Source: Hyalangium minutum (GTDB lineage Bacteria > Myxococcota > Myxococcia > Myxococcales > Myxococcaceae). From it: a stretch of 64,000 nt of DNA. Location of the stretch: contig NZ_JMCB01000020.1 in assembly GCF_000737315.1 (NCBI RefSeq), positions 166,253 to 230,252 on the forward strand, in the 5' to 3' direction. Below, in pieces: positions 8,782 to 59,785 of this stretch (positions are counted from its first letter, which is position 1; each line of letters starts with the position of its first letter). The translations under genes were made by a program, and so were the position numbers. Under the pieces are notes generated by a model. That model saw nothing but the letters and a program-made list of their open reading frames with translations. It was not told where the DNA came from and did no database searches.

Positions 8782-8790
8782 GCGGAGGGA

Positions 8791-30804: not shown

Positions 30805-31015
30805 GGCGGCCTGTCGTCTAACACACAGAACGCCACTTGCATGGGTTCCGCGCAAAATGCTCGCCCGTCCGGCAGGCAGCCGCAGGTGTTGAAACCCGGA
30901 GAGATCGGCGCGTAACAGTGTCGCCCCGCTAACGGCCAGTCCGTCCGATCCTCCGGAATTGCCGGGGGGTGGCTTGTCGCTCCCCGGAGGGCCCCCTTAT
31001 CTCGGTGCTGGCCCC

Positions 31016-32911
31016 ATGCTGCCTCCTGACTTCGAGAATGTGCTCGCACATCTTCCCCAGGCCACGCTGCGCGTGGGGCCGGATCTCAAAGTCCAATGGC
31101 TCGAGGCGGACTTCGCCCGAAAAGTAGGTGTGGCTCCTACCGTGGAGCGAGGTCTGCTCGAAATCCTGGAGTACGGCCGGAGCCGGGATGCGCTGGAGCG
31201 CGCCGTGCGCGAGGGCCGCGAGCACGAGGGCCACGTCATCACCAGCACGATGCGTCAGGTGCGCGTGCAGGTGCGGCGGCCGCAGGACGGCGAGCCGCCT
31301 GGGGCGTGGATTCTCTTCGAGCCCTCGGGGCTGGACGACGAGGGCGCTTTCTCGCAGGTGGTGCAGGACATCGCGCGCGCGGTGGGCGAGACGCTGGAGG
31401 TGGACAGCGTGTGCTCCGCGGCGGTGACGGCCCTGGTGCGCTGTGCCCGGGTGCGGCGTGCGGAGGTGTTCCTCTGCGAGGCCGAGGGCCAGGGGACGCT
31501 GCGCCGCGCCGCGGTGTCGGACCTGGCCGAAAGTGAGTCTCCCGAGGACGCGTTTGATCCGACGGCGGATCCCTTCGTCCAGGCGCTGGGCACCCGCCGG
31601 GCGCAGATTGGCATCCAGCGTGGCTATGGCGACTCGATGGGCTCCATCTTCGCCGCGGTGCCGCTGTGCGCGCCCAAGCGCACGGTGGGGTTGTTGCTGC
31701 TGTACAAGGAGCAGGGCGCCTCGTTCTCCGCCAAGGAGCTGGACTTGTGGACGGCGGCGGCCGGCCAGCTTGCGGTGGCGGTGGAGAACGCGCGGCTCTT
31801 GAGGGAGGCGCAGGCGGCGCTGCGGGTGCGCGAGGAGTTCATGTCCATCGCCTCGCACGAGCTGAAGACGCCGCTCACGCCGCTCAAGCTGAGCCTCTTC
31901 ACGATGGAGCGCCGGCTGGCCACGGGGCAGGCGGTGGAGCTCTCCAGCATTTTCAAGTCCAAGCGGCAGGTGGACCGGCTGGTGGGGCTGGTGGATGACC
32001 TGCTGGACGCCTCGCGGCTGGAGCTGGGCAAGCTGGAGGTGAAGCGCGCGCCGCTGGAGATGGGGCAACTGGTGGCGGAGGTGGTGGATCAGTTCCGCCA
32101 GGCCTTCGACCGGCCCTTCATGGTGGACGTGCCGCGCCAGCGCGTCTGGGTGCAGGGCGATCGGAACCGGCTGGAGCAGGTGATGGTGAACCTGCTGGAG
32201 AACGCGCACAAGTACAGCAACGCGGGCGAGCTCATCAACGTGGAGGTGGAGGAGGCAGGCGACGAGGTCCGGATCCACGTGAAGGATCGCGGCATCGGCA
32301 TTCCGGGGGCGGATCAGGCGCAGGTGTTCCAGCGCTTCTACAAGGCGCGCAACGTCTCGCACCGCAACTTCGGAGGGCTGGGGCTGGGGCTCTTCATCAG
32401 CCACTCCATCTGCAATCTGCACGGCGGCAACCTGACGCTGTCGAGTGCGGAGGGACAGGGTTCCACCTTCACGGTGACGATGCCGCGCATGTCGCAGCGC
32501 GAGGTGCGGGAGCTGCCGCCGCGGGTGCTGCTGCTGGACGAAGATAAGGAGCACGAGGCCGAGGCCGAGCGCGTGCTGCGCTCCGAGGGCTTCGAGGTGC
32601 TCACGGTGCGCACAGGAGACGAGGCGCTGCGCAACGCGGCGGCGCTGCCGGTGGACATCATCCTGCTGTCGGCGACGGCGTCACAGCAGGAAGTGGGCAT
32701 CTTCCTGGAGACGTTCGCCACGCTGCCACGGGCCCGGCCGGTGCCGATTCTGCTGGCGGGAGCGCGGCGGCCGGCCTGGGCGTGGGAGGGCACGGTGCTG
32801 TGCTCGAGGCCCTACCGCGCGGACGAGCTGATCGCCCGGGTGCGCAACACGCTGGCGCTGACGCCCGAGCCGGGCTGGCCCGTGGCGGAAGAGGCTACCG
32901 TCCGGATGTGA
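31016..32911 (+). CDS. Sensor histidine kinase (PAS-like, GAF, HisKA, HATPase, atypical receiver)
   Basis: IASHELKTPLT, NLLENAHKY, DRGIGI, GLGLGL; C-terminal receiver-like domain. Confidence 0.9.
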   Translation: MLPPDFENVLAHLPQATLRVGPDLKVQWLEADFARKVGVAPTVERGLLEILEYGRSRDALERAVREGREHEGHVITSTMRQVRVQVRRPQDGEPPGAWILFEPSGLDDEGAFSQVVQDIARAVGETLEVDSVCSAAVTALVRCARVRRAEVFLCEAEGQGTLRRAAVSDLAESESPEDAFDPTADPFVQALGTRRAQIGIQRGYGDSMGSIFAAVPLCAPKRTVGLLLLYKEQGASFSAKELDLWTAAAGQLAVAVENARLLREAQAALRVREEFMSIASHELKTPLTPLKLSLFTMERRLATGQAVELSSIFKSKRQVDRLVGLVDDLLDASRLELGKLEVKRAPLEMGQLVAEVVDQFRQAFDRPFMVDVPRQRVWVQGDRNRLEQVMVNLLENAHKYSNAGELINVEVEEAGDEVRIHVKDRGIGIPGADQAQVFQRFYKARNVSHRNFGGLGLGLFISHSICNLHGGNLTLSSAEGQGSTFTVTMPRMSQREVRELPPRVLLLDEDKEHEAEAERVLRSEGFEVLTVRTGDEALRNAAALPVDIILLSATASQQEVGIFLETFATLPRARPVPILLAGARRPAWAWEGTVLCSRPYRADELIARVRNTLALTPEPGWPVAEEATVRM

Positions 32912-32957
32912 GGACGCCGAAGCCCGTGGGGGTGATGCCCGCGCGGGCCAGCGCCTC
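32879..32957 (+). repeat. 79-bp direct repeat, copy 1
   Basis: Identical to 34249-34327 (CCCGTGGCGGAAGAGGCTACC...GGGCCAGCGCCTC). Confidence 0.95.
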
Positions 32958-33024
32958 GGAAGAGGCCGCCCACGCAGCGCCAGGATTGCGGCACCTTTTC
33001 GCCTACCTGTAGCATGGGGCTTGA

Positions 33025-33591
33025 ATGAACGCCCTGGTTCGCGAGGGTTGTCGCTCGGGTACGTCCTGCGGACCCGTGTCCGCATGCTGGATGTGGCCCA
33101 CTGCCACGGGGGCATTGGCGCTTGGTTTTTCTCTTGTGACGGGGTGTGTTGCTCAGCAGCCTCATGAGCATGTGGGACCCCTGATGCGGACGGATTGCCC
33201 TTCCTCGCTGGATATCCCCTCTGTCGAGGAGTGCCGTGAGGCGGCTTGGGGCATCAGTGATGAACTGTTGAGGATCTGTGTGCAGGGGCAGTGCGGCAGT
33301 ATTCAGGTCAAGTGCAGCGAGCGAGCCCGCCTGCAATGCAAGGCAGACAATCGAATCTATGGATTTACCATGCTCGCTTATACGCCCACGCCCAACTACT
33401 ACGGGACGTTGAATTATTTCTTTCCAGTTGGGGAAACATATTGGTGTGAAGAGCCGCTTTCCCACGAGTGCATCGTCAAGGCGCTGATTCACGAACTGGC
33501 TCATTCTTGTGGGTGGGAGCACCGAGGTGGGCGGAACGTGCCAGGGAACGATCCACCCCGTGAGTCCATCCCTGAATGCAGGCCGGGGTAG
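33025..33591 (+). CDS. Cys-rich lipoprotein with metzincin-type zinc motif
   Basis: Lipobox LVTGC; HELAHSCGWEH fits HExxHxxGxxH; alternative start ATG 33091. Confidence 0.7.
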   Translation: MNALVREGCRSGTSCGPVSACWMWPTATGALALGFSLVTGCVAQQPHEHVGPLMRTDCPSSLDIPSVEECREAAWGISDELLRICVQGQCGSIQVKCSERARLQCKADNRIYGFTMLAYTPTPNYYGTLNYFFPVGETYWCEEPLSHECIVKALIHELAHSCGWEHRGGRNVPGNDPPRESIPECRPG

Positions 33592-33596
33592 AGGCG

Positions 33597-34214
33597 ATGC
33601 TCCGGGCTCACAGCCATCGAGAATGGCTCATCCTCGCGCCGCTGATTTTGCTTCTAGCGGGGGCGTGTAAGGCATTCGGTCCTTTTGGGGAGCAAAAGAC
33701 GGCGGGCGCTGAGAAGGGGCGGGCCGCGGTTCCTTGTGACGTCGCCGGAGGCCAAGAGCGCTCTCCTGTCAAACTGGAGATGCAGGACGTGCAGTATGAC
33801 GGGGCGTGGCTTTCGGGGAGATTGCTCATCAGCCCCGGGGCCGAGAGCGTCAGTCTGGATAAGAGGCTGCTTCCGTATCACAGTGTCTACATTCATTCCG
33901 TTTCGGACTGCGGCACGGGGCGGCCCGTAAAATACATCGAGTGGAATGGAGTGCCGCCTCCTGCTCGCGAGGCGGATCTCCTGACCCTGGAGTGTGGCTA
34001 TTGGTATGGAGCGATGGTGCGTTTCCACGTGTTCGTGGATTGGGTCTCAGGGCCAGGACCCGAGTGCATCAACGCGGAGCTCACGATCTTTTCGTCAGAA
34101 GGGCGGCCTCTGGGGCACCTGCCGGTTCGTGCCGAACGGGCTTCGACGAGCCCAGTGGATGGTGGCTCGTCGGGAGAGATACCTCCCGCCCCAGATGCAG
34201 GCCCATGGCAATAG
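33597..34214 (+). CDS. Hypothetical lipoprotein (partner of the metallopeptidase)
   Basis: GAGG RBS; lipobox LAGAC; starts 5 nt after the upstream stop. Confidence 0.7.
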   Translation: MLRAHSHREWLILAPLILLLAGACKAFGPFGEQKTAGAEKGRAAVPCDVAGGQERSPVKLEMQDVQYDGAWLSGRLLISPGAESVSLDKRLLPYHSVYIHSVSDCGTGRPVKYIEWNGVPPPAREADLLTLECGYWYGAMVRFHVFVDWVSGPGPECINAELTIFSSEGRPLGHLPVRAERASTSPVDGGSSGEIPPAPDAGPWQ

Positions 34215-34248
34215 GGCAAGAGCTGTAGGGGACGCAGCGCTCGACGGT

Positions 34249-34327
34249 CCCGTGGCGGAAGAGGCTACCGTCCGGATGTGAGGACGCCGAAGCCCGTGGG
34301 GGTGATGCCCGCGCGGGCCAGCGCCTC
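34249..34327 (+). repeat. 79-bp direct repeat, copy 2
   Basis: Identical to 32879-32957. Confidence 0.95.
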
Positions 34328-35011
34328 TCGGGCCTTGGGGTGGACGAAGGTGGACAGCTCCACCTCGCGTTGAGCCGAGTAGCCGCTCTTCACAGCCTCA
34401 GGGGTGTAGCCGGGGTGGCACATCAGTTCGATGACGCCCGAGACGGGAAGAGTGGCCATGGCGGACTCGAAGCGCTCCAACGTCCAGTAGGCCTCCGCGC
34501 CCGCGTCTCCAATGAAGTGCGCGTTGGTGGCGACGCCCTGGGCCTGGAGCTCGCGACGCATGGGCTCGTTGATGGAGCGCACGGGCAGGCCCTGCTCGCG
34601 GGCCACCTGGGCGAGCCCCGCGAGCACGTTCGGGTGGAGGTGCAGGTGCTTGTGCACGTCCACGTGGGTGGCGGGGCGGCCCAGCATCGAGGCCAGCCGC
34701 TCCAACTGGGCGCGCACTTCGTGCACCACCGCTTCCGTGGGGAGTGTGGCGGCGCGGGGCTCGGCGAAGGCACCCTTCTCCAGGAACTCTCGAGGGAAGC
34801 CGGGCCACACGGGCTCGCCCCGGGCCAGGTTGAGGTGCAGTCCGATGTGGAGCCCGTGAGCCTCGCGCGCGGCGGCCTCGGAGTAGGGCGTGTTCACCAT
34901 GAAGGTGGCCGACGACACGACGCCCTCGCGCATCGAGCGGAGGATGCCGCGGGTGACGGCCGGGTCATACCCGAGGTCATCGGCGTTGATGATGAGGGCG
35001 CGGGTGTTCAT
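34265..35011 (-). CDS. ChbG/HpnK (YdjC) family deacetylase
   Basis: LIINADDLG, GLHLNL, THVDVHKH, ELMCHPG. Confidence 0.9.
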   Translation of the reverse strand: MNTRALIINADDLGYDPAVTRGILRSMREGVVSSATFMVNTPYSEAAAREAHGLHIGLHLNLARGEPVWPGFPREFLEKGAFAEPRAATLPTEAVVHEVRAQLERLASMLGRPATHVDVHKHLHLHPNVLAGLAQVAREQGLPVRSINEPMRRELQAQGVATNAHFIGDAGAEAYWTLERFESAMATLPVSGVIELMCHPGYTPEAVKSGYSAQREVELSTFVHPKAREALARAGITPTGFGVLTSGR

Positions 35012-35018
35012 GGGGCTC

Positions 35019-36032
35019 TCAGGGGCGAGGGTGGGCCTCGAAGAAGCGCCACATCTCTCGCGTGGCGTCCAGATCCTTCGTGGTGTAGCCGTACTCAGGG
35101 GGCATGAGGCCGCCGGGCCAGGTGTGGCCTCCGTTCAGGACAGTGCAGAGCGTGGCGGGGGCAGTGCAGCCGGAGTGCGTGCGGCAGGTGCTGTCGCCCA
35201 CGCTGTAGGTCTGCTGGAGCGGGCCGGTGCAGTCGTTGCGCTCAGCCCACTTAACCACCGTGTTGGGCGCGGAGGGGTAAGGACGGCCGAAGGGAATGAC
35301 GCCTCCGTCATAGGAGATGGTGGGATCGGCGGTGCCGTGGAAGTGCATCACTGGCACAGGGCGGGTGGGGTTGCAGGGAAGAACGTTCTCACTGCCTGCC
35401 ACGGGGGCGATGGCAGCAAAGCGCGCGGCGCGATCGCAGGCCAGCCGGTAGGCGAAGAAGGCGCCATTGGAGAGCCCGGTGGCGTAGGTGCGGCGGGTGT
35501 CCACGCAGACGCGCTTGTCGAGGTCCGCGAAGAGCTTCTCCACGAAATCCACGTCGTTCACGCCGTAGATCTGCGCGGGGCCGCAGCAGCCGCCCGCGTT
35601 CCAGCTGCGAGTGTCTTCGGTGCCACCGTCCTGGCGCAGCGCCTCGGGGAAGTTCACACCGAAGGGGTAGACGGCGATGAAGCCCTTCTCATCCGCGACC
35701 TGGGAGATGCGGCTGAGGGCCTCCTGCTCCAGGGCATCCGAGGAGAACCCATGGAAGGCCACCACGACGGGCGTGGGGCTCGTCGCCACATAGGTGGGAG
35801 GGATGTGGATCCGGTAGGTGCGGTCCCGCTCTTCGTGGCGGAGCACGAAGGTATGGGTGCCTGCTCCCAGAGTGAGCCCGGAGCAGGCGGTGCGATCCAC
35901 GATGGGTGGGTAGGGATCCACGGGCGTCACGCCCGCATCCGGAGTGTTGGAAGGAGGATCCTCGGTGCAGCCCGTGGCGCCAGCGAGCAGTACGAGGGCG
36001 CCAGCACACACCAGGCGGAAGAGCAGAGGCAT
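35019..36032 (-). CDS. PHB-depolymerase/LpqC-type esterase lipoprotein
   Basis: Lipobox ATGC; VAFHG, YATGLSNG nucleophile, FHGTAD, GGHTWPG. Confidence 0.85.
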   Translation of the reverse strand: MPLLFRLVCAGALVLLAGATGCTEDPPSNTPDAGVTPVDPYPPIVDRTACSGLTLGAGTHTFVLRHEERDRTYRIHIPPTYVATSPTPVVVAFHGFSSDALEQEALSRISQVADEKGFIAVYPFGVNFPEALRQDGGTEDTRSWNAGGCCGPAQIYGVNDVDFVEKLFADLDKRVCVDTRRTYATGLSNGAFFAYRLACDRAARFAAIAPVAGSENVLPCNPTRPVPVMHFHGTADPTISYDGGVIPFGRPYPSAPNTVVKWAERNDCTGPLQQTYSVGDSTCRTHSGCTAPATLCTVLNGGHTWPGGLMPPEYGYTTKDLDATREMWRFFEAHPRP

Positions 36033-36118
36033 GGGTGCGAAGATTTAATCCGAACCGGTCAGGGTTCCCAGGAACCCGTGGTGGCACCTTCTCGGCCTGT
36101 TTGAAAAACGGCGCTGAG

Positions 36119-36454
36119 TCAGGGCTGAGGGGACTCGCATTCCCACTGTAGGTCATCGGCGTTTGCTTGCTCGAAGGGGGTGAGCTGTCCGCAGGGGACT
36201 CGCTCCTCGGTGACTCCCGAGCAAGTACCGATCGCGGCGCTCTTCCGGTGCGCGACGATGTGCTCGCCGTTGATGCACTCCCAGAAAGCGATGTCGTGAC
36301 CCGCCTCCACTCCCGTCTGACACTCGCGATCAGGAGGGGTGTCCAGTGCATCCCGCGGATGGTCGCCGCAGCAGGCTTGGAGCGCGAGCAGCAGTGGAGC
36401 GAGGAGCAGACTGTGGGACACGCGGCTTCCCAGAGCAGTTCGAGCGTTGGCCAT
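36119..36454 (-). CDS. Small Cys-rich lipoprotein
   Basis: LLLAPLLLALQAC lipobox; multiple Cys. Confidence 0.55.
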   Translation of the reverse strand: MANARTALGSRVSHSLLLAPLLLALQACCGDHPRDALDTPPDRECQTGVEAGHDIAFWECINGEHIVAHRKSAAIGTCSGVTEERVPCGQLTPFEQANADDLQWECESPQP

Positions 36455-36577
36455 GCGCCCGAGGTTAGCACCTCGCGGTGAGGCTCCGTGAGAGCCCTTC
36501 GAGGCGCAGCTTCCTCGTGCAGGTGCCGTCCCGCTAGGATTCGGGCAGGCCTCGCCTGCCTCTCAGGAGCGCTCCAT

Positions 36578-36994
36578 ATGACTTGGGTGACCTATGCGTT
36601 GCTCTCGGCCGGCTTTGCGGCGGCTACGGCAATCCTTGCCAAGGTGGGAGTGGAAGGCGTGCCTTCGAACCTCGCCACGGCCATCCGGACAGGGGTGGTG
36701 CTCGTGTTCTCCTGGGGCATTGTGCTTACTCGCCGAGAGCATGAGGCGTTGCCCGCCCTCAGCCACAAGACGGTGCTCTTCCTGGTGCTCTCCGGTGTGG
36801 CCACCGGCCTGTCCTGGCTCGCCTATTTCCGTGCGCTCCAGCTCGGGCCGGCCTCACGGGTGGCGCCCATCGACAAGCTCAGTCTCGCGATGACCCTGGT
36901 GCTCGCCGTGGTGGTGCTGAAAGAGCCCCTGTCGTGGAAGCTAGCGCTCGGTGTCGCCCTCATGGTGGCCGGGGCGCTGCTGACCCTGAAGTGA
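36578..36994 (+). CDS. EamA family transporter (single domain)
   Basis: ALLSAGFAA.TAILAKVG, LSG.ATGLSWL.YFRAL, APIDKLS. Confidence 0.88.
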   Translation: MTWVTYALLSAGFAAATAILAKVGVEGVPSNLATAIRTGVVLVFSWGIVLTRREHEALPALSHKTVLFLVLSGVATGLSWLAYFRALQLGPASRVAPIDKLSLAMTLVLAVVVLKEPLSWKLALGVALMVAGALLTLK

Positions 36995-37019
36995 AGGGGA
37001 GAATGCTAGGGTTCCGAGC

Positions 37020-37694
37020 GTGTCCATCTTGATCGTCGAAGATGAGCTGCGGGTCAGGGCCTTCATTGCTCGAGGCCTCACGGAAGAGGGCTTCCGCATC
37101 CGCGAGTCCGTGGACGGGTTGCAGGCCCAGGAGCTGCTGCGTCACGAGCGCTTCGATCTCATCTTGCTCGATTGGATGCTCCCGGGACTTCCTGGGCTGG
37201 ACCTGCTCCAAGCGCTGCGGGGACGGCGGGACACGACCCCAGTCCTCATGCTCACGGCCCGGGACGCAGTCGCGGAGCGAATCGCAGCCCTCAATGCCGG
37301 CGCGGACGACTACCTCGTCAAGCCCTTCGCCTTCGAGGAGCTGCTCGCGCGCATCCGGGCCATCCTCCGCCGCGTCTCCAACCGGGCCAGTCCCATCCTC
37401 AGCCATGCGGATCTCACGCTCGATCCGGTCTCGCGAAAGGTGGTGAGAGCGGGAGTGGAGATCTCGCTGACCGCGCGTGAGTACGCGCTGCTTCAATTCC
37501 TCCTGGAGCACGCGGGAGAGGTCGTCTCCCGGACGCGGATCGTCCAGGCCGTGTGGGACCACGACTTCGAGACCTTCTCGAATGTGGTGGAGGTGTACAT
37601 CCGTTATCTCCGCGCCAAGGTAGACGATCCCTTTGGCGTCAAACTCATTCATACCGTGCGCGGCGTGGGCTATGTCCTGCGGAGCGGTGCGTGA
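37020..37694 (+). CDS. OmpR-family response regulator
   Basis: LIVEDE, LLDWMLPG, LTARD, GADDYLVKPF, HTVRGVGY. Confidence 0.93.
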   Translation: MSILIVEDELRVRAFIARGLTEEGFRIRESVDGLQAQELLRHERFDLILLDWMLPGLPGLDLLQALRGRRDTTPVLMLTARDAVAERIAALNAGADDYLVKPFAFEELLARIRAILRRVSNRASPILSHADLTLDPVSRKVVRAGVEISLTAREYALLQFLLEHAGEVVSRTRIVQAVWDHDFETFSNVVEVYIRYLRAKVDDPFGVKLIHTVRGVGYVLRSGA

Positions 37695-38773
37695 GGGGTC
37701 CCAAGACGCTGAGTGCCCGGTTGACGCTCTTCTTCGCCGGGGCTGTTCTGGGCACCATCCTTCTTCATGGCGGGTTGGTGGCCACGGTCCTCATCAGCGT
37801 GGAGTGGCTCGAGCGGCGCGCAGCCCCTCCGGGAGCGCCAGAGGATAGCCTTTTCGACGAGCTCGGGCCTGTGCTCGGCGCCCTGGCCTTCACGGCGCCA
37901 TTCACCGTACTCGGTGCAGCGGCGCTCGGGCGTGCGTTGGCACGGCAAGCCTTGGCTCCCATGCGCGAGGCCAGCACGCGCACCCGCGCCGCACGCGCCT
38001 CGGCATTCGACCTGAGCCTTCCTGTCCGGGGCTCTGGAGATGAGTGGGACGAGCTTGCCTCCACGCTCAACGCGCTCCTTTCGGACGCACGCAGTGCATA
38101 TGAGCGCACCCGCCGCTTTACCTCGGACGCCGCACATGAGCTGCGTACACCTCTGACCATCATCATGGGAGAGACAGAGGTTGTCCTGCGTCGTGAGCGC
38201 GCGGCGGAGGAGTATCGCCGCTCGCTGGAGGTCATTCAGGCGGAGAGCCGCGGGCTCTCGGAGCTGGTGGAGGCGCTGCTCACCCTGGCGCGCGCGGATG
38301 CCGGCCAGCTCGTGACGGCGGGAGAGGCTGTGGACCTGTATCTGCTCGCCCAGAAAGCCACCCAGCGGGCCGAGCGGCTGCTGGCGGTGCAGGCCCGTAC
38401 CGTGCAAGTCGAGCTCTCGGGGACCTCCGCGCTGGTTCGCGGTGATCCCGTGCTCTTGGCCCGGGTGCTGGACAACCTCCTGTCCAATGCGCTCCGGCAC
38501 TGCCAGGGGCGGGTCCGTATCGAAGTCCGTACTGCCGAAGAGGGCGCGCAGGTGAGCGTGGTGGACAACGGTCCCGGCGTCGAGCCCTCCTTCGCGCCAC
38601 GGCTCTTTCAGCGCTTCGCGCGAGCCGACACCATGCGTGGGCAGGAAGGAACGGGGCTTGGGCTAGCGCTCTCACGCACCCTCATCGAAGCACACGGCGG
38701 AGCCCTCACTTACTCTTGCTCTCCGGCGGGCGAGAGTGTCTTCACCGTCTGCCTCCCGGTGCTCCCAGAGTAA
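37691..38773 (+). CDS. Sensor histidine kinase with HAMP domain and short extracytoplasmic loop
   Basis: Two close TMs; DAAHELRTPL, NLLSNALRH, DNGPG, GTGLGL; GTGA overlap with the regulator. Confidence 0.9.
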   Translation: MRGPKTLSARLTLFFAGAVLGTILLHGGLVATVLISVEWLERRAAPPGAPEDSLFDELGPVLGALAFTAPFTVLGAAALGRALARQALAPMREASTRTRAARASAFDLSLPVRGSGDEWDELASTLNALLSDARSAYERTRRFTSDAAHELRTPLTIIMGETEVVLRRERAAEEYRRSLEVIQAESRGLSELVEALLTLARADAGQLVTAGEAVDLYLLAQKATQRAERLLAVQARTVQVELSGTSALVRGDPVLLARVLDNLLSNALRHCQGRVRIEVRTAEEGAQVSVVDNGPGVEPSFAPRLFQRFARADTMRGQEGTGLGLALSRTLIEAHGGALTYSCSPAGESVFTVCLPVLPE

Positions 38774-40343
38774 TTTCGGGTGGGCGCTCAGCGGCTTGCC
38801 CCGTGAGATGCCACTGCGAGCAGTACCAAAGGTGGAAGGTCGTCACGGCTCGCTCGCCCCGGTGTACCGTGACGGGAGGGAGTTCTCGTACTGCCCCGCA
38901 GTGAGCCGGCAGGCGCGTGGCCGCGTCGCGGAGCGGTTGCCGGGCATCCGCCACGACGATCGCGTCCTGGCCACGGCCCACGCGGTCGATCCAGAAGTCA
39001 TAGGCAAGCCCCGGACCGCCCAGCGCCGTGTCCGATTGGGTCTCGGGGTGGTCTGGCAGGTAGAAGGCCAGCTCGCTCGCCGTCTTGTAGCTCCAGCCCA
39101 CCACCAGTGGTTGTGTCCCTTCGGAGCCCGCCTGCTCGCGAAAGCGCTGAACATGGCTGGCCAGTTCGCGCCAGCCGCTCACCAGGTTGTCACGCTCTCG
39201 GAACGGAATGAGGGGCCACAGCGGCATCAGGTACATGCCCAAGACGAGCAGGGCGCCAACGCCCATGGAGGCGAGCCCATAGCCCAGCCGCCCACCCCGC
39301 TGCCGAGACTCGTACCAACCGGACGCGGCTGCGACCAGAAGGCCGAGATAGGCAGGCGCCACCCAGTTCATCTTCACCCAGTGACAGGGACTCACCACCG
39401 TGAAGAGCACAAGCCCCGGCACGCTGGAGAGACACAACAGCCGGGCTCTTGGGTCATCCAAGAGTGAGCGGCGCACAAGGAGCGCCGCCGTGAAGAGGAG
39501 CTCCAGGTAGAGGAGCGGTCCCACGGCGACGGCCTGCAACCCGAAGTACCGCCCGGCGAGGTGGGGCTGAAAGCCGGTCACGGACTGGAGCCGGCCTTGC
39601 GTCTGGAAGCTGAAGGATGCCCAGGCGTGCTGGGCGTTCCAGATGAAGACGGGAGAGAAGACCGCCAGCGCCAGGACGAGGCCGAGGTAGGGATGAGGGA
39701 GGCGGAGGGCGGCGCGGCCGCGAGGAAGCAGCAGCGCCGTCACGAGGATCTGCGGCGGCAGCAAGGCGGCGGTGTACTTCGACAGCATCGCCAGCCCGCA
39801 GAGCAGTCCTAGCAGGTACCAGCGGAATCCGGCCCGGCCAGCCCCCGCTCCGTCCGGCAGGACCAGTTCACAGAGCACCCGGAGCGCCGCCGCCCAGAAG
39901 AGCACGAGAGGGACGTCGGGGGTCATCACCACAGCGCCCAGCCCCAAGAGCACGGTGGTGTTGGCAGCCAGCGCCGTGAGCGCTCCCACCGCGGGCGAAT
40001 ACAGACGGGCCCCGAGCGAATAGAGCACCCACGTCAGGAGGGCACCCGACACCACCGCGGGCAGGCGAACACCCAGCTCCGTCACGCCGATCAGTCTCAC
40101 GGACAAGGCAATCAGCCATGCGCTCATCGGCGGATGATCGAAGTACGACAGCTCCAAATGGCGGGAGTACTGCCAATAGTACGCCTCCTGAGGAGCGAGC
40201 TCCACCAGGGACGCGTAGAAGAGCCGGAGCACGGCCAGGACACAGCTCGCGAGCAGGACCCAGCGCCCCCACGAGGGAGCGGCGAGGGGTGGAGCCGTGA
40301 AGGCCCGCGGAGATGGCCCTGACCGCTTCATTGCGTGCTCCAC
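38742..40343 (-). CDS. Glycosyltransferase family 39 (ArnT/PMT-like)
   Basis: EAYYWQYSRHL..SYFDHPP, TPD, GLAMLSKYT, WNAQH.W; multi-pass. Confidence 0.85.
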   Translation of the reverse strand: MEHAMKRSGPSPRAFTAPPLAAPSWGRWVLLASCVLAVLRLFYASLVELAPQEAYYWQYSRHLELSYFDHPPMSAWLIALSVRLIGVTELGVRLPAVVSGALLTWVLYSLGARLYSPAVGALTALAANTTVLLGLGAVVMTPDVPLVLFWAAALRVLCELVLPDGAGAGRAGFRWYLLGLLCGLAMLSKYTAALLPPQILVTALLLPRGRAALRLPHPYLGLVLALAVFSPVFIWNAQHAWASFSFQTQGRLQSVTGFQPHLAGRYFGLQAVAVGPLLYLELLFTAALLVRRSLLDDPRARLLCLSSVPGLVLFTVVSPCHWVKMNWVAPAYLGLLVAAASGWYESRQRGGRLGYGLASMGVGALLVLGMYLMPLWPLIPFRERDNLVSGWRELASHVQRFREQAGSEGTQPLVVGWSYKTASELAFYLPDHPETQSDTALGGPGLAYDFWIDRVGRGQDAIVVADARQPLRDAATRLPAHCGAVRELPPVTVHRGERAVTTFHLWYCSQWHLTGQAAERPPEITLGAPGGRR

Positions 40344-40465
40344 TTCCAGGCGCTCGAACGTCCGCGCACCGGTCTCAGAGGGACAGCGATGATTGATGCC
40401 GGTTGCCAGCCCCTGGCGCCATCTCTCTCCAGGAGCATGAGGGCCTTCTCATCTGATCCTCATGC

Positions 40466-43400
40466 TCAGGACACCTGCGGCCCGCGCTCGCGCCTGCGGA
40501 CCAGCACATAAGCGGGGGGGAGTCCCAGCAGCACCACCAGCGTGGAGATGGATAGCCCCCCCAGGACGGTGATGGCGAGCGGGCGCTGCAGCTCCGCGCC
40601 CTCGCCCAGCCCGAGCGCCAGAGGAACGAGCCCGAGCAGCGTCGCCAGTGTCGTCATCAGGATGGGGCGCAGGCGCACGGCCGCCGCGCGTTCGACCGCC
40701 TCGCGTGCTCCGAACCCTTCCTCACGCTCCTTCTCCGCGTGGTCGAGCAGCAGGATGCCGTTCTTCACGACGAGGCCGACCAACAGGATGGAACCCATCA
40801 ACGAGGAGACATTGAGCGGCACACCCGTGAGGCGCAGGATCGCCAGCCCCGAGACGAGAGCGACCGGCGCCACCCCCAAGATAAGCAGCGGGAGCACCAG
40901 GCTGCGGAAGTGGAACGTCAAGATGAGGAAGACGCCGAACGTGGCGAGCGCGAGAACGAGCAGCAGCCCACGAAAGGACGCTTGTTGGCTGTCGCGCTGC
41001 CCCCCTACGCGCAGCTCTACCCCTTCCGGAGGCTTCAGGTCCGCGAGCCGTGCTTGCACGTCCGCCGTCACGCTGCCCAGATCCCGGCTCTCCAGCCGCC
41101 CAGTCACGGGGACGAGCGGGCGCAAGTTCTCAGACAGCAGCTCCGCGGGTAGGCACTTCCGCCGGAGCTGGGCCACCTGAGACAACGGAGCCGTGGTGCC
41201 GGAGGGCGTCCTCAGCCGGAGCTGTTCGAGGACCTGAGCATCAAGACGATCCTCATCGCGCAGGCGCACCCGTACGTTCACCCACCGGCCGGTGCGGGGA
41301 ATCGCGCTCACCACCTGCCCGAGCAAGGCCGTGCGGACCTGGGCCGTCACCTCTTGCGCGGTGAGTCCAGCCCGGCCCGCGGATGCGAGCTGGAGCTCCA
41401 GGTGGATCTCCGGCGTGCACCCCGAGACGCCATCATAGAGGTCCACCAAGCCGGGGATGTCCTGCAGGCGCTCGGCCACCTGCGGCGCGAAGCTCCGGAG
41501 CACGCTGACATCCTCACCCTGGAGCTTGACCTCGATCGGGTCGGGATTTCCCTCCAGATCGGAGAGCACATCCTGCAGCAGCTCGATGAATTCCACCCGG
41601 ACGCCCGGAGCTACTGACTCCACGCGCGTGCGGGCCTCCTCGATGACTTGCGGTCCGGAGCGAGTACGGCGGTGTTTCAGCTCCACCGTGATGTCCCCCA
41701 CGTAGGACTCGGTGGCCGCGGGGGGGCCCAGCTCCGCGCCGAGGCGCCTGCTGGTACTTGCGACCTCTGGCAAGGCCGCGACGGCTGCTTCTATCTGCCG
41801 CCCGAGCCGGTCCGCTTCGTTGAGCGAGGTGCCGGTGGGCGTGAAGTAATCCACCACGAACGCGCCCTCGTCGAGCTCGGGAAGGAAGCCGGTCCCCACG
41901 CCGCTGGCGATCCCAGCGAACAGCACCGTGATTGCTGCCCCCACCGCCACCGTCCGCCACGGCCGTGAGAGCAGCCGTGAGAGCACGCGGTCATAGAGAC
42001 CTCGAGGAGTCCGCGCATGAGTGGCCTGGGGCAGGAGCAGCCAGCCGCACAGCAGCGGTGTCAGCGTGACTGCCACCGCGAGGGAGATCAGCACCGCAGC
42101 TGAGAGCGTGAACGCGAGCGCGGCGAAGAACTGGCCAGAGACGCCCGACAACAGCGACAGCGGCGCGAAGACCACGACCGTGGTGAGCGTGGAGTTGGTC
42201 ACGGGCCATGCAATCTCCCGAAGGGCGTCGGCCGTCGCAGCCCATCTCTCCATTCCGCTGGTGACACGGCGGTACACGGCCTCAACCACCACGACCGCGT
42301 CGTCCACGACGAGCCCAATCGCCACGGCGAGTCCGCCGAGCGACATGAGATTCATCGTTCCCCCCGAGAGCTCCAGGGCGGCACAGGTCATGAGCAGGGT
42401 GACGGGGAGCGCGGCCGCCGCGGCGACCATCGCTCGCCAGGATCTCAGGAAGAGTCCCACCACGATGAGCGTGAGGAGTCCTCCCAGCGCCACGGCGTCA
42501 CGCACGTTCCTCACGGACCGGGCGATGAGACCGGCCTGATCATAGGTGACGAGCACTTCGATGCCTGGAGGCAGCCCCGCCCGTATGCTCTCTAGCTCCG
42601 TGCGGATCGCCTGGGCCAGCGCGATGGCGTCAGCCCCGGGCCGCCGTCCGATGTTGACCAGCGCCGCGGGCTTGCCGTTGGCGGAGGTGAGGGACAAGCG
42701 ATCGGCGCGCCCCTCCTCCACGCGCGCCACGTCCCCCAGCAGGACCGGTGACTCGGGGCTGCCCCCCACCATGATCTGGGAGAGCAAGTCGAGGTCTTCC
42801 ACCGGTCCCTGGACCACCACCAGCTCTTGCCGGTAGTGGACGTCCAGCCGGCCCACGGGCTCGAGCTTGAGCGCGTCCGCCACCGCGCTGGCCAGCCGGG
42901 ACATGTCGAGCTGCGCTTGCTCCAGGCGCACGGGATCGACGGTGATCTCCACCTCTCGCGTGTCGCCACCGATGACGTCCACGCGGCCTACGCCCGGCAA
43001 GCCCGCCATCCGTGGGCGCAAGGTATAGAGCGCGAAGTCGCGCAGTTGTACGGGCTGCGCCGTGCCTGTTACCGCGAGCGTCTGGATGGGGAAGGACGAA
43101 GGGGTCAACCGCTCGGCAGTGAGGGTGACTTCCTGTGGAAGCTCTCCCCGGAGCTCGGCGAGCCGTGCGTTGATGAGGCTCAGCGCCTGGTCCATGTCGG
43201 CGCCGGGATCGAACCAGAGCGACACCTCCGACGCAGCCCGGATGGTTCTCGAGCGGACCCGCTGTACGCCCAAGACCGTGGATAGGCCCTCCTCCACGGG
43301 GCGTGTCACCGACAGCTGCATCGTCTCCGCGCTGGCGCCGGACAGGGTCGCCGCGACGACGACGCGCGGAAAGGACACCTCTGGATAGAGCCCTCCTGGC

Positions 43401-43495
43401 AGCGTGACCAGCGAGATGCCGCCGAAGACGCAGAGGGCCACCGCCAGCGCGGCCAGCCCGGGGGCGTGCCGCCGCAGAAACCCCACCAGGCTCAA
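40466..43495 (-). CDS. RND efflux permease (AcrB/CusA superfamily)
   Basis: GLVVDDAVVVVE (TM4), VKNGILL (TM10), RLRPILMT; TTG start overlapping the MFP stop. Confidence 0.92.
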   Translation of the reverse strand: MSLVGFLRRHAPGLAALAVALCVFGGISLVTLPGGLYPEVSFPRVVVAATLSGASAETMQLSVTRPVEEGLSTVLGVQRVRSRTIRAASEVSLWFDPGADMDQALSLINARLAELRGELPQEVTLTAERLTPSSFPIQTLAVTGTAQPVQLRDFALYTLRPRMAGLPGVGRVDVIGGDTREVEITVDPVRLEQAQLDMSRLASAVADALKLEPVGRLDVHYRQELVVVQGPVEDLDLLSQIMVGGSPESPVLLGDVARVEEGRADRLSLTSANGKPAALVNIGRRPGADAIALAQAIRTELESIRAGLPPGIEVLVTYDQAGLIARSVRNVRDAVALGGLLTLIVVGLFLRSWRAMVAAAAALPVTLLMTCAALELSGGTMNLMSLGGLAVAIGLVVDDAVVVVEAVYRRVTSGMERWAATADALREIAWPVTNSTLTTVVVFAPLSLLSGVSGQFFAALAFTLSAAVLISLAVAVTLTPLLCGWLLLPQATHARTPRGLYDRVLSRLLSRPWRTVAVGAAITVLFAGIASGVGTGFLPELDEGAFVVDYFTPTGTSLNEADRLGRQIEAAVAALPEVASTSRRLGAELGPPAATESYVGDITVELKHRRTRSGPQVIEEARTRVESVAPGVRVEFIELLQDVLSDLEGNPDPIEVKLQGEDVSVLRSFAPQVAERLQDIPGLVDLYDGVSGCTPEIHLELQLASAGRAGLTAQEVTAQVRTALLGQVVSAIPRTGRWVNVRVRLRDEDRLDAQVLEQLRLRTPSGTTAPLSQVAQLRRKCLPAELLSENLRPLVPVTGRLESRDLGSVTADVQARLADLKPPEGVELRVGGQRDSQQASFRGLLLVLALATFGVFLILTFHFRSLVLPLLILGVAPVALVSGLAILRLTGVPLNVSSLMGSILLVGLVVKNGILLLDHAEKEREEGFGAREAVERAAAVRLRPILMTTLATLLGLVPLALGLGEGAELQRPLAITVLGGLSISTLVVLLGLPPAYVLVRRRERGPQVS

Positions 43496-44580
43496 CGCAC
43501 CACCTCCACTTCGGTCCCTTCGGGCAACGAGTAGCCCCCCTCCACGATGACGCTCTCACCGCCCTTGAGCGGCCCCGTCACCACCGCCTGACCCTCCTCC
43601 TCCGAGAGCACCGTGACTGGCAGGAGGTGCACCTTGCCCGCTTCGATCTCCGCTACGCCCAGCCCACCGTCCTCCAGAGGGAGAAGCGCAGTGGAGGGCA
43701 CCGTCACCGCTCCGCTCTCCTCGCCCGTGATGATGCGAGCCCGGCCGAGGCTGCCGATCCGCAGCTCCGCCGACGGATTGGGAAAGCGGCAGCGAACCAG
43801 GACGTTGCCGTTTTGCGCGTTGATGGAGGGTGAGACGCGGAGCACCTCACCGGTAGCCTCATGGCTGACAGCGTCTGGCAGTCCCTCGACGCTCAACGTC
43901 GCACGCATGCCAGAGCGGATGCGCGCGGCTTGTGCGGGTGTTACGAACGCGCGGAGTTCCAGTGGGTCGATCTCCGCCACTTGGACGACGGGCTGGCTGG
44001 TGCCGTCCACCACCTCTCCTTGCCGGATGAACACGGCCGTCACGACTCCGGCAAAGGGGGCCTTGAACTCGCTGTAGCCCACCTTGCGGCGAGCCAGATC
44101 GAGAGCGGCGCGGGCGCGCTGCTCCGCGGCTCGTGCAGCCACCTCGGCGGCGCGAGCCTGCTCTACTTCCTCCCTCGCCGCGACCCCGTGCTCCAAGAGC
44201 ACCTCGGACCTCGCGCGCTTGGACTCCGCCGCCTGCGTGGCGGCCCTGGCCTCTTGGGCGGTCGCCTCTGCCTGCAGGTACTCGTCGGACACAGGCCCTG
44301 TCTCCACCTCTCCGAGCACCTGGCCTGCCCGGACCACATCCCCCTCGGAGACCTGGAGCCTGGCGAGCCTGCCAGGCACGAGAGGCCCCAGCTTGACGTC
44401 CCGGCCCGGTGGCGCGGCGAGCACGCCGGTTGCCGTCACGGCCTGTGCGGCGGGGCCCTGTCGCACCAGCCCCTCGCGTACCCGGGGGAGAGGAGGGGGC
44501 TCGCCCCCCGCCGGACGAGCCTCCTGGCAGGCGGCAGTGGCCCCAACACAGAGGAGGCAGCATACGAGGCTAGTTCTCAT
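43492..44580 (-). CDS. RND periplasmic adaptor (MFP) lipoprotein
   Basis: Lipobox TAAC; G...L.V.EGD.V..GQ.L, KAPFAGVV. Confidence 0.88.
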   Translation of the reverse strand: MRTSLVCCLLCVGATAACQEARPAGGEPPPLPRVREGLVRQGPAAQAVTATGVLAAPPGRDVKLGPLVPGRLARLQVSEGDVVRAGQVLGEVETGPVSDEYLQAEATAQEARAATQAAESKRARSEVLLEHGVAAREEVEQARAAEVAARAAEQRARAALDLARRKVGYSEFKAPFAGVVTAVFIRQGEVVDGTSQPVVQVAEIDPLELRAFVTPAQAARIRSGMRATLSVEGLPDAVSHEATGEVLRVSPSINAQNGNVLVRCRFPNPSAELRIGSLGRARIITGEESGAVTVPSTALLPLEDGGLGVAEIEAGKVHLLPVTVLSEEEGQAVVTGPLKGGESVIVEGGYSLPEGTEVEVVR

Positions 44581-45778
44581 CGAGAGCGGCTCCGGCAGCG
44601 AGTTCCAGCGCGGCGAAAGCAGCCTGCGCGTTGAAGGACGCCTCGATGGCCTGTGCGCGGGTGTCCGTGGCTGCGCGCCGGGCGTCGTTGAGAGAGGCCA
44701 GCGCACTTCGTCCGGCGCGGTAAGACTCCAGGGCCATTCGCTCCGTGGCCTCGGTGGCCGGCAGGATGTCCGCCGAGAAGCGCTCGAGCGCCGCGAGGGC
44801 CGCGCCGAGCCGCTGATGTGCCGCGACGAGTTCCGACAACCTGCGCTGGCGGTCGTCCGCCGCGAGGACATGGGCTACGCGCAACGAGGCCTCCGCCCGA
44901 TCGAGCTCCCCGCGCCCCAGGCCTGGCACCGGCACCTCGAAGTCGAGCGAGCCTCGGAGAAAGACACTTGCGCCCCGAGGCCCTTCACCTTCCGCCGCGA
45001 CACCCAGGCTGGGAGCGGGCCAGCGCTCCAGGCGAGCCGCCCGGAGCGTTGCCTCCGCGGCCAGGATGTCTGCTTGCCTTGCCTGCGCAAGGGGGGCTTG
45101 GCTTGCGCGGGAGAGGATTTCCTCGAGCGAGAGGAGCCGGGGCGGAGGGCCAGACACGGGCTGCAGCAGGCGGCGAGGATCACGTCCCAGGAGGAGAGCC
45201 AACTCGGCGGAGAGTGCCCCTACTTCTCCCTGCTGTGTCAGCAGCTGCGCCTCGGCGGAGGCGCGGGCAAGCCTGGCCTGCACGAGATCCAACTCTGGTG
45301 CGGCTCCGGTCTGGAAGCGCAGCTGGGCTGCCTCTTCGGCCTCACGGGCAATCGCCAGCGCGCGGCTGGCGGTGTTGGCGAGCTGCGTGGCGCGGAGCAG
45401 CGAGAAGTACGCCCGTCTCGCTTCTGCTCGGGACTGGACCTCGCTCGCGTGCCGCTCACCCTGGGCGCTGTGCACGCCGTGCTCGGCGGCGCGGACGCGG
45501 GCTGCCCGTGCGCCGGGGATGGGGAGCCGCTGGGAGATACCCGCCGACCAGTGGGGATCGTTCCACCCTCCTCCCAGCGACACCGCCAGCGGCGCCAGCG
45601 TCCGGGCTCCTTCCACCTCTCCCTGGGCCACAGCTTCCCGGGCGCGTGCTTCGGACACGCCCGGGGCCTTGGCGGCAGCCTCGGCCAGCGCGGCCTTCAA
45701 TGGCAGCTCTTCCGGGGCCTTTGCGAGCACTCCGCTCTTCAGGACGATGATGAGTGATGCGATGCTGGCAAGGTGCAT
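44570..45778 (-). CDS. TolC-family outer membrane factor
   Basis: Helical repeats, F..GAAPELDLVQA, Y..G..AL; first gene of the OMF-MFP-RND operon. Confidence 0.85.
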   Translation of the reverse strand: MHLASIASLIIVLKSGVLAKAPEELPLKAALAEAAAKAPGVSEARAREAVAQGEVEGARTLAPLAVSLGGGWNDPHWSAGISQRLPIPGARAARVRAAEHGVHSAQGERHASEVQSRAEARRAYFSLLRATQLANTASRALAIAREAEEAAQLRFQTGAAPELDLVQARLARASAEAQLLTQQGEVGALSAELALLLGRDPRRLLQPVSGPPPRLLSLEEILSRASQAPLAQARQADILAAEATLRAARLERWPAPSLGVAAEGEGPRGASVFLRGSLDFEVPVPGLGRGELDRAEASLRVAHVLAADDRQRRLSELVAAHQRLGAALAALERFSADILPATEATERMALESYRAGRSALASLNDARRAATDTRAQAIEASFNAQAAFAALELAAGAALDEN

Positions 45779-45976
45779 CGGCTTCTCTCGGAGAAGAAAC
45801 GCGCGGTGGCTGTAACACGCGCCATTCCAGCGTTGAATCCGATGAGAGATTTCTCATCCTCCACCCAACTCAGTGACACCTCGGGGTGTTGAGGAGCCTT
45901 CTCATGGGCCACGTGTGAGAGTCTTCTCATTTGCGGCTCAGGCCTCATTTACCTGGAAAGGACATCGTGCTCGCTC

Positions 45977-46498
45977 ATGCACGAGGCAGGTGGGCAACTC
46001 CTCTTCGCGGGCTGGATGGTCGATTGGTATTACGCGAGTGTTGTCCCTACAACTGCCAGCGGCAGTTCACTGCGAGTCCGCAGCTACCAGGGCTCTCGGC
46101 CTGCTCACACCGAGCTCACCTGGAAGGGGCCGGCACTTCGGGACACTGGCTACAAGGTTCGAGAGGAGCTCTCCACGGTGGTCGCGGAGGAGCAGGCCCT
46201 GATGGAAATCTTGCAACGGCTTGGATTCACAGTGACGCGAATCCTGGAGCGCGAGGTGATCCAATATTCGTGCGCTGGAGCCCTGATTCGCTTCGAGCAG
46301 TTTCCATTGATGGACACGCTCGTCGAGGTGGAAGGTGAACCCGAGTCCATTGAGCGTGTCATCCAGTGGATGGGGCTTCCGCGAGCCGGCTTCACCTCGG
46401 AACCCCTGGCGAAATTTGTCAGCCGTTTCGAGGAGCGCACAGGGCGAAACGCGCTGCTCGCGCGGTCACACCTCATGGCCCACGCGCCGGTGGCTTGA
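45977..46498 (+). pseudogene. CYTH-domain (class IV adenylate cyclase-like) protein, apparently N-terminally truncated
   Basis: LRVR, LTWKGP, K.REE, LGF, VEVEG motifs present; the family N-terminal ExExK motif is absent in frame. Confidence 0.55.
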
Positions 46499-46550
46499 TC
46501 TGTTGATGTTCAGAACACTGCCGAGACACGGCGGCCACTGGCAGCTTTCG

Positions 46551-49273: not shown

Positions 49274-49302
49274 ACCTTGCCTTCCTTCCTGGAGAGACCT
49301 TC

Positions 49303-59033: not shown

Positions 59034-59096
59034 CGCGCTCCCGTTCCCGAAGTTTCCCCACACACGGGCCGGGAGACCGGCCGAGAGGCACTCACG

Positions 59097-59624: not shown

Positions 59625-59756
59625 GCGGCCGCCGCGGAAGCACGCGCCCCCGGGCGCCGAGGCCCTTCGTGAGGACCTGCTCCTCACGCGGGGCCTCTGT
59701 CTTTCCGGGCATTTACGCACTGTGCGCAAACATCCTAGATGCCTCGATTCGCTTGA

Positions 59757-59785
59757 TATCCAAGAATTTAATTATTTCTTGGGAT
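59757..59785. promoter_or_regulatory. AT-rich imperfect palindrome upstream of the HEAT gene pair
   Basis: ATCCAAGAATTTAATTATTTCTTGGGAT, preceded by TTGATA. Confidence 0.4.

Follow-up and report, generated by a model that had tools for sequence, protein, structure and literature searches.

A probable toxin-immunity gene pair inserted with an exact 79-bp duplication into the 3′ overlap of a histidine kinase gene and a ydjC-family gene

Introduction

Genomic islands flanked by att sites occur at gene 3′ ends, and derivatives of them that carry no recombinase include the CIME, Xer-dependent IMEX, and pdif modules. Insertion with duplication can also result from template switching, or from tandem duplication followed by deletion, and such events are of the FoSTeS/MMBIR type. 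The SitA/SitI systems of myxobacteria comprise lipoprotein toxins for which outer membrane exchange is the delivery route (PMC5562445, PMC8546572).

In this study, a 64-kb window (the whole stretch of DNA that was analysed) was found to contain a cassette of two lipoprotein genes, ORF1 and ORF2, between exact direct repeats at the ends of two convergent genes. The cassette resembles SitA/SitI in its myxobacterial host, its candidate lipoprotein toxin (ORF1), its adjacent immunity candidate (ORF2), and its small, polymorphic form; it differs in that ORF2 is itself a lipoprotein, and the likeness drawn here is one of organisation (PMC5562445, PMC8546572). No description of this insertion architecture or of the ORF1 toxin family was found in the literature.

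An exact duplication completes two convergent genes

As the first-pass annotation had reported, the sequences at 32879-32957 (copy 1) and 34249-34327 (copy 2) form a direct repeat that is identical at 79 of 79 positions, with an offset of 1370 bp. A match of 79 bp was absent from all of 100 shuffles, and the repeat is the sole exact long repeat within the window. The left flank is occupied by a plus-strand gene (30959-32911) for a histidine kinase with Pfam matches to GAF, HisKA, and HATPase_c, whose last 11 codons and stop codon lie inside copy 1. Offsets 1-33 of copy 1 thus encode the kinase C-terminus and its stop (TGA at 32909-32911, offsets 31-33), and offsets 34-79 duplicate the 3′ end of the gene on the other side without coding for protein. 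This right-flank gene, on the minus strand at 34265-35011, encodes a YdjC-family carbohydrate deacetylase (Pfam PF04794, E 5e-52; NCBIfam matches under curated cut-offs). Its C-terminus and stop occupy offsets 17-79 of copy 2, with the stop codon at 34265-34267 (offsets 17-19), and offsets 1-16 of this copy duplicate, likewise without coding, the 3′ end of the kinase gene. Beyond ydjC lies a minus-strand gene for a PHA-depolymerase-like esterase (35019-36032). The gene coordinates therefore agree with the earlier statement that copy 1 holds the kinase stop and copy 2 the end of ydjC. Both reading frames are complete, as had also been claimed, and they are so only because of the duplication.

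The earlier annotation had further stated that collapse of the repeat would leave the two genes overlapping by 17 bp, and had suggested that an empty site be sought in related genomes. Recomputation with a single copy gave the same 17-bp overlap, and cassette-free sites with this overlap, almost identical in sequence to the collapsed repeat, are present in five relatives (L001, L004, L082, L087, and L117). The arrangement in the window is therefore a real insertion. The base next to the repeat is G after copy 1 and T after copy 2 (34328), and at the latter position L081, L082, L004, and L006 have G and the genomes L001, L087, L117, and L003 have C. Because G is found at the corresponding base in relatives, the duplication may originally have been 80 bp.

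An assembly error, in which the second 79-mer copy or the placement of the cassette would not be real, was also considered. The repeat is perfectly exact, 79 is a default k value of MEGAHIT, and the window's own proteins were missing from the protein collection, so that there was no other assembly of this genome for comparison. However, in an independent assembly, that of L081, the cassette likewise lies between the kinase gene and ydjC, and the junctions 79-mer|GGAAGAGG and GACGGT|79-mer could not be built from an empty allele and an L081-like allele. In addition, an assembly graph with k=79 would be interrupted by the repeat instead of traversing it twice, and an artefact would have to account for flanking genes that are both whole only through the duplication. 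Such an error is therefore very improbable.

Junctions and other copies of the cassette in relatives

The closest relative, L081, has a kinase orthologue with 95% nucleotide identity to that of the window (the orthologue in L001 shows 91% amino acid identity). In L081 the repeat is reduced to 13 bp (TCCGGATGTGAGG) and the junctions are unlike those of the window, although the cassette ends of the two nearly coincide. The right junction of L081 can be derived from that of the window by deletions: removal of 34243-34266 from the window gives GCGCTCACCGTCC, which supplies an in-frame TGA for ydjC and differs from L081 by one nucleotide. Five further copies of the gene pair (L082-L086) are located at other loci, with neither a flanking repeat nor a 79-mer-like sequence beside the cassette, and the pair is scattered across unrelated loci in Myxococcaceae genomes. 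The L082 cassette lies just upstream of the esterase start, about 2 kb away from the window's site, and the L083 cassette lies about 7 kb from an esterase homologue, both in the same orientation as in the window.

The cassette alleles fall into two clades, which correspond to the two positions (the kinase-ydjC overlap in the window and L081; the esterase side in L082 and L083). The dS of the cassette was 0.62-0.85 between the window and L081, 0.62-0.65 between L082 and L083, and 1.0-1.7 between the clades, whereas that of the flanks was 0.18-0.36 between the window and L081, so that the cassette value is 2-4 times higher. The GC3 of ORF1 was 0.65 in the window allele and 0.82 in the L081 allele. 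The higher cassette dS and the GC3 difference also fit separate acquisitions at the same site, against a single shared placement. A shared placement was nevertheless preferred to independent insertions in the window and L081, given that the clades of the cassette correspond to position and that its ends are nearly the same in both.

The first-pass annotation had read the insert as a minimal integrative cassette that uses the coding overlap as an att-like landing site. In the fuller form of this explanation, a non-autonomous element, comparable to CIME or IMEX, would have the 79-bp overlap region as its att core and would be integrated and excised by a recombinase from another part of the genome. 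The long exact repeats do rebuild both target genes, as attL and attR do for islands located at the 3′ end of a gene, and the likeness extends to the direct repeats that flank the element, the rebuilt 3′ end, the lack of a recombinase inside, and a precise excision that is possible in principle. The empty sites in relatives and the frequent mobility of toxin-immunity pairs point the same way, and repeated targeting would explain why one site is filled in two lineages by alleles that have diverged beyond their flanks and differ in GC3. On the other hand, L081 has other junctions with its 13-bp repeat, the five copies elsewhere are without repeats, and the copies of the cassette, unlike the known islands, share no conserved core and show no dif-like or recombinase-binding structure. 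The 79-mer is plain, lineage-specific coding sequence and not a conserved recombinase site. No terminal inverted repeats were found at the ends of the insert, and its two ORFs bear out the earlier remark that no recombinase lies inside; none was found either among the annotated genes from 12.7 to 64 kb of the window (51 kb around the cassette). Searches of phage, viral-contig, and plasmid collections gave no copy of the gene pair, and thus no carrier. That the cassette clades track position suggests one old placement per site. Degraded repeats around the same cassette in relatives had been named beforehand as evidence contrary to the integrative reading, and the nearest relative, L081, is such a case. 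The claim of an exact duplication stands, and that of an att-like landing site is unlikely. No transposase was found in the insert. An insertion sequence or transposon was rejected for want of inverted repeats and a transposase and because the duplication is not short and fixed in length, with 79 bp in the window and 13 bp in L081.

Composition and edges of the insert

The insert is 1291 bp long, and its two ORFs gave no match in Pfam or NCBIfam. Its left unique edge, with the region upstream of ORF1 (32958-33024, plus strand), begins with GGAAGAGGC; C+GGAAGAGGC therefore repeats offsets 8-17 of the 79-mer, a 10-bp identity (CGGAAGAGGC) at the left junction that was spotted post hoc. A TTGCGG...TAGCAT stretch upstream of ORF1 is conserved with L081-L083, and a scan of 32700-34500 for promoter and terminator consensus sequences called nothing, this stretch included. 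The right unique edge (34215-34248, 34 bp) is unique in the window and contains GCGCTC, which is present too at the cassette 3′ ends of L081 and L082. No source for the two unique edge sequences was found elsewhere in the window, and a 15-mer match to the Ser/Thr kinase gene of L081 could not be extended and was attributed to chance. No other kilobase of the window is as low in GC as the cassette (0.598 compared with 0.64-0.73), and its GC3 is 0.65 compared with about 0.9. A flanking duplication was also sought around a neighbouring 10.4-kb island, and none was found.

The low GC and GC3 are consistent with the capture of foreign DNA, in which a horizontally acquired fragment would have been joined into a staggered double-strand break within the overlap by Ku/LigD end-joining, and the fill-in of overhangs of roughly 80 nt would have produced the duplication. 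The junctions bear neither a homology-based nor a site-specific signature, unique edge sequences of 19 bp and 34 bp could be filler, and the gene pair occurs at scattered, unrelated loci in Myxococcaceae. However, the nearest relatives of the cassette are located in the same 2-8 kb neighbourhood of sister genomes and in the same orientation, which favours a local origin. Overhangs of this length are not known to be a regular product of any bacterial nuclease. Foreign capture is thus a minor contender, with a somewhat better claim than an integrative element.

Proposed origin and fate of the insertion

The explanation that we favour, while giving it about an even chance of being correct, is that a toxin-immunity operon was placed once, non-site-specifically, by an accident that duplicated about 80 bp of the target, that its donor was local, and that the repeats now serve as a substrate for recombination. 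The operon would have landed in the 17-bp 3′ overlap of the kinase gene and ydjC. The route may have been a replication template switch, which is equivalent to a local tandem duplication with a later deletion, or a staggered break may have been repaired by fill-in. An insertion spares both genes only if it duplicates the overlap or more, and the duplication would therefore have let the insertion survive. Because the sister clade carries the operon towards the esterase gene and in the same orientation (about 2 kb away in L082), the donor was probably on the same chromosome, and the cassette may have moved about 2 kb from the esterase side. Such an event would resemble FoSTeS/MMBIR-type events in the insertion of a nearby segment in the same orientation, a target duplication of tens of bp, short identity at the junction, and the lack of an enzyme signature. 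It would differ in that the donor copy is gone from this genome and the event is read from sister genomes only. The esterase side of the window and of L081 has neither a donor copy nor a relic, which calls for the assumption of a second loss.

The placement probably predates the divergence of the window and L081, and L081 would later have deleted the redundant halves of the duplication. A rough estimate from the flank dS predicts about 8-14 differences between unmodified copies, and none was seen. For this reason gene conversion must be invoked to explain why the copies in the window are still identical, or else a duplication younger than it appears. The locus shows two fates of a duplication over time: it is exact in the lineage of the window, and in the sister lineage, L081, it has been cut back to 13 bp.

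As a substrate for homologous recombination, the repeats would permit both gene conversion and precise loss: a crossover between them would excise the cassette as a circle of 1370 bp and return the two genes to their exact overlapping form. Loss of the cassette in this way is plausible. A bolder version, in which the pair is a recombinase-free, reversible plug-in that carries its own landing site, leaves as the 1370-bp circle by homologous recombination, re-enters the empty sites of near-identical kin after DNA uptake, and is kept in the population, despite its deletion-prone structure, by toxin-immunity addiction, is improbable. If it were true, gene overlaps would act as safe harbours, as no gain or loss other than a precise one would be viable in them.

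Nothing in the locus points to dedicated integration machinery, and it represents neither a new kind of mobile element nor a new integration mechanism. It is instead a clean natural example of a gene pair inserted into overlapping coding sequence with neither gene damaged.

ORF1 and ORF2

ORF1 (33025-33591, plus strand) encodes a Cys-rich lipoprotein of 188 aa, much shorter than the described SitA proteins, and sequence inspection showed its lipobox (LVTGC) to be conserved in its homologues. A profile search with the ORF1 domain gave 135 matches. The motif HELAHSCGWEH...VPGN is invariant, and in alignment A3 the HExxH residues predicted for zinc binding (the histidines) and catalysis (the glutamate), followed by G and the third H, are invariant as well. 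The domain also recurs in Rhs proteins, at their extreme C-terminus, where it starts directly after DPxGL and where HExAHxCGWxH is conserved. The carriers (P0068, P0112, P0143, P0070, P0095, P0122, and P0166) all have RHS_repeat and the RHS core, and the HExxHxxGxxH core is kept in all the Rhs tails but that of P0143, which has no third histidine. The dN/dS of ORF1 (about 0.1) indicates purifying selection. Although the core of an AF2 model of ORF1 reached a pLDDT of about 90, a Foldseek search of the PDB with this model gave no significant fold match. Sequence searches with ORF1 and its homologues against Pfam (E up to 10), NCBIfam, and the PDB returned only weak similarity to zincins, reprolysin, and MMPs, and the domain family is without a Pfam or NCBIfam model. 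From its sequence, ORF1 is a candidate metallopeptidase-type toxin, and its Cys-rich HExxHxxGxxH domain, found on Rhs tips and in stand-alone Myxococcaceae lipoproteins, would be an unannotated toxin domain.

ORF2 (33597-34214, plus strand) also encodes a lipoprotein, of 205 aa from the ATG at 33597 or 212 aa from 33576, with a LAGAC lipobox and a β-sandwich core. An ORF2 homologue follows the ORF1 homologue in all seven of the contexts for which DNA was at hand. The closest relative of ORF2 is P0011 (81% identity), and the dN/dS is 0.2-0.3. No match to ORF2 was obtained in Pfam (E up to 10), in NCBIfam, or by sequence in the PDB. We infer from its position that ORF2 is a candidate lipoprotein immunity protein and, judging from sequence features, that ORF1 and ORF2 probably constitute a toxin-immunity pair. 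In agreement with polymorphic toxin-immunity modules, the ORF1 domain is located behind DPxGL at Rhs C-termini, a small downstream gene is co-conserved, and the pair is low in GC, fast evolving, and patchily distributed. In contrast to such modules, the ORF1 domain here stands alone behind a lipoprotein signal peptide, unfused to a delivery protein, and the immunity role of ORF2 is putative. As a candidate partner of ORF1, ORF2 could be assayed in kin discrimination.

At the one Rhs locus that was inspected, the downstream gene encodes an unrelated lipoprotein and not an ORF2 homologue. A Foldseek search with ORF2 returned nothing beyond generic β-sandwich folds (Brr2 Ig-like, AsaP1, and arrestin-like; TM 0.26-0.35), and among these AsaP1 is a toxic zinc metalloendopeptidase.

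Duplication at the kinase-ydjC boundary

An exact 79-bp duplication had been proposed by the first-pass annotation, and the sequences at 32879-32957 (copy 1) and 34249-34327 (copy 2) were indeed identical at an offset of 1370 bp. No match of this kind appeared in shuffled versions of the window, and a scan over the whole window detected no further exact long repeat; an assembly artefact is considered very improbable. Copy 1 contains at offsets 31-33 the TGA stop (32909-32911) of the left gene (30959-32911, + strand), which encodes a GAF-HisKA-HATPase_c histidine kinase, and copy 2 contains at offsets 17-19 the stop (34265-34267) of the right gene (34265-35011, − strand), which encodes a YdjC-family protein. 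Collapsing the repeat to one copy made the 3' ends of the kinase gene and ydjC overlap by 17 bp, just as had been claimed. A perfect 12-bp palindrome, GCCCGCGCGGGC, coding for A-R-A-G of YdjC, lies within both copies (32937-32948 and 34307-34318).

The search for empty sites that the same annotation had recommended was performed with YdjC as query on species-representative genomes and metagenome contigs. A kinase-ydjC overlap of exactly 17 bp was found in five relatives (DNA records L001, L004, L082, L087, and L117), including a Hyalangium sp. MAG (L001) whose kinase shows 91% amino acid identity, and the overlap sequence of all five is almost equal to the collapsed repeat. Therefore, the structure in the window arose by insertion into an ancestral overlap, and both flanking genes stay complete thanks to the duplication. 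As a mark left by illegitimate insertion into overlapping genes, the duplication is unusually clear. The base 3' of copy 2 is a synonymous T peculiar to the window (G in L081, L082, L004, and L006; C in L001, L087, L117, and L003), and the base 3' of copy 1 is G. These bases hint that the duplication may originally have been 80 bp, with at least one substitution since.

The 1291-bp insert between the copies carries two ORFs in the same orientation. Its GC content of 0.598 is the lowest of any kilobase of the window (0.64-0.73 elsewhere), and its GC3 is approximately 0.65 versus approximately 0.9 in the flanks. A 95-aa ORF (33994-34281, + strand) overlaps ORF2, terminates with the last 11 codons of the kinase as copied by the duplication (PVAEEATVRM), and is unlikely to be a gene.

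Cassette copies in relatives and their age

The nearest relative, L081 (95% nucleotide identity in the kinase gene and 89-91% in the remaining flanks), carries the same cassette between the kinase gene and ydjC. Its repeat is only 13 bp (TCCGGATGTGAGG, at 2334-2346 and 3541-3553), and both junctions are unlike those of the window. Three positions at the kinase end are changed, the overlap with ydjC is gone, and the ydjC stop is TGA. Deletion of 34243-34266 from the window gives GCGCTCACCGTCC, which has an in-frame TGA and is 1 nt from L081; the right junction of L081 could be derived from that of the window by deletions. In L082, where the kinase-ydjC site is empty, the cassette is located in the same orientation past ydjC and the PHA-depolymerase-like esterase gene (35019-36032 in the window, − strand), just upstream of the esterase start. 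The L083 cassette lies approximately 7 kb from an esterase homologue, and more distant copies occupy unrelated loci in L084 to L086. Neither flanking repeats nor a 79-mer-like sequence was found beside the cassette in any of L082 to L086 (0 of 5). The L083 copy (7646-9053), in which the ORF1 frame is open only from about residue 80 and ORF2 runs without a stop to 350 aa, is possibly decaying. The distant ORF1-ORF2 pair of L085 (5001-5995) is flanked on one side by the gene for a very large protein with an Eco57I domain and on the other by that for a DEAD/Helicase_C/MZB helicase, a setting that looks like a defence island.

Flank dS was 0.18-0.36 between the window and L081 and 0.29-0.38 between the window and L082, and the cassette genes were 2-4 times more diverged than the flanks at synonymous sites (0.62-0.85 for window-L081, 0.62-0.65 for L082-L083, and 1.0-1.7 between clades). 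The cassette alleles form two clades matching two chromosomal positions, which favours one old placement per position; the kinase-ydjC placement therefore probably predates the split between the window and L081. By our own rough calculation from flank dS, approximately 8-14 differences between the repeat copies would be expected at that age if they had been left alone, and none was observed. Either the copies have been kept alike by gene conversion or the duplication arose after the cassette had been placed. By established RecA biology, gene conversion would be plausible between identical 79-base repeats separated by 1.3 kb. A younger duplication is possible given the gap in ORF1 GC3 between the window allele (0.65) and the L081 allele (0.82).

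Origin of the duplication

The structure had been interpreted as a minimal integrative cassette with no recombinase inside. The gene content of the insert agrees with the latter statement, and the integrative reading found no support: inverted repeats were absent from the insert ends, neither the insert nor the gene set of window 12.7-64 kb includes a recombinase or transposase, independent cassette copies share no core sequence, and no copy was found on phage, viral-contig, or plasmid records. The sequence gives no sign of a dedicated integration system. Movement of the cassette by a recombinase acting in trans is improbable, and capture of foreign DNA by end-joining is unlikely.

At the left junction, the 10 bp CGGAAGAGGC (the last base of copy 1 and the first 9 of the insert; 32956-32966) are identical to offsets 8-17 of the 79-mer (32886-32895); CGGAAGAG is present also at the esterase start of the window (36015-36022). 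The 10-bp identity, a target duplication tens of bp long, a likely donor position approximately 2 kb away, and the unchanged orientation fit a one-off event better, and we put the chances of a one-off duplication-insertion, not dedicated integration, at about even. The event may have been template switching during replication, tandem duplication with later deletion, or the filling-in of a staggered break. Of such events, only those in which the 17-bp overlap or more was duplicated would survive selection. It is reasonable that recombination between the repeats could remove the cassette and restore the overlap, with no need for an integrase. Should the cargo be a toxin-immunity pair, its loss would leave a cell sensitive to kin, and this deletion-prone arrangement may persist for that reason.

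Candidate toxin and immunity genes

The cargo is probably a previously undescribed member of the polymorphic toxin-immunity kind. ORF1 (33025-33591) has a lipoprotein signal (LVTGC) and a Cys-rich mature part with an invariant HELAHxCGWxH...VPGN motif, which matches the metzincin pattern HExxHxxGxxH. Comparison with Pfam, NCBIfam, and PDB sequences gave only sub-threshold zincin, reprolysin, and MMP matches, and no solved fold resembled the confidently modeled core of its AlphaFold structure. Searching 1.84 billion representatives with a profile yielded 135 relatives of ORF1. In the seven checked (protein records P0068, P0112, P0143, P0070, P0095, P0122, and P0166), the domain sits at the very C-terminus of a protein with Rhs repeats; in those for which the alignment shows the end of the Rhs core, it begins right behind DPxGL. 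HExAHxCGWxH is conserved in all of these tips except that of P0143, which lacks the final histidine (6 of 7). Because the extreme C-terminal tip of Rhs-repeat proteins is the position that defines polymorphic-toxin domains, ORF1 is best read as a stand-alone, lipoprotein-anchored candidate toxin of an unannotated metallopeptidase-like family. Its dN/dS is approximately 0.1.

ORF2 (33597-34214) encodes a lipoprotein. Its β-sandwich, predicted with confidence, is similar to generic Ig-like folds only. In each of the seven genomic contexts covered by DNA records, ORF2 lies 3' of an ORF1 homologue, and its dN/dS of 0.2-0.3 indicates moderate constraint. From this linkage alone, ORF2 is a putative immunity protein. 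At the single Rhs locus examined (L167), the gene after that for P0143 with its ORF1-type tip encodes a lipoprotein of 170 aa (4285-4797) that is not related to ORF2. This lipoprotein, which represents a further candidate immunity family, fits periplasmic immunity proteins and is no proof of the ORF1-ORF2 pairing.

Genomic setting

The window belongs to the core part of a high-GC myxobacterial chromosome, with Ppk, Ppx, MltG/YceG, TruB, and QueF among the neighbours, and its closest relatives are Hyalangium and Myxococcaceae genomes. A 10.4-kb block (36110-46551) between the esterase gene and a Ser/Thr kinase-TPR gene encodes a small lipoprotein, EamA, an OmpR-type regulator and histidine kinase, a PMT_2 glycosyltransferase, an AcrB/HlyD/OEP efflux pump, and a CYTH protein. 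Neither a flanking duplication nor a recombinase was found for this block. It is missing from L081, L003, and L006, where the esterase gene directly adjoins the Ser/Thr kinase-TPR gene, and different cargo occupies this junction in L082 and L004. Within a 1203-aa ORF (15052-18663), a 240-bp coding unit occurs approximately seven times in tandem over 16537-18230, its copies being 61-93% alike. Three neighbouring paralogous genes of approximately 150 aa each, without a Pfam match, are located at 48809-50207 and are kept in L081 and L082. Diverged repeat blocks at 58550-63291, 60-82% alike and spaced approximately 560-660 bp and approximately 3016 bp, indicate duplicated paralogous genes.
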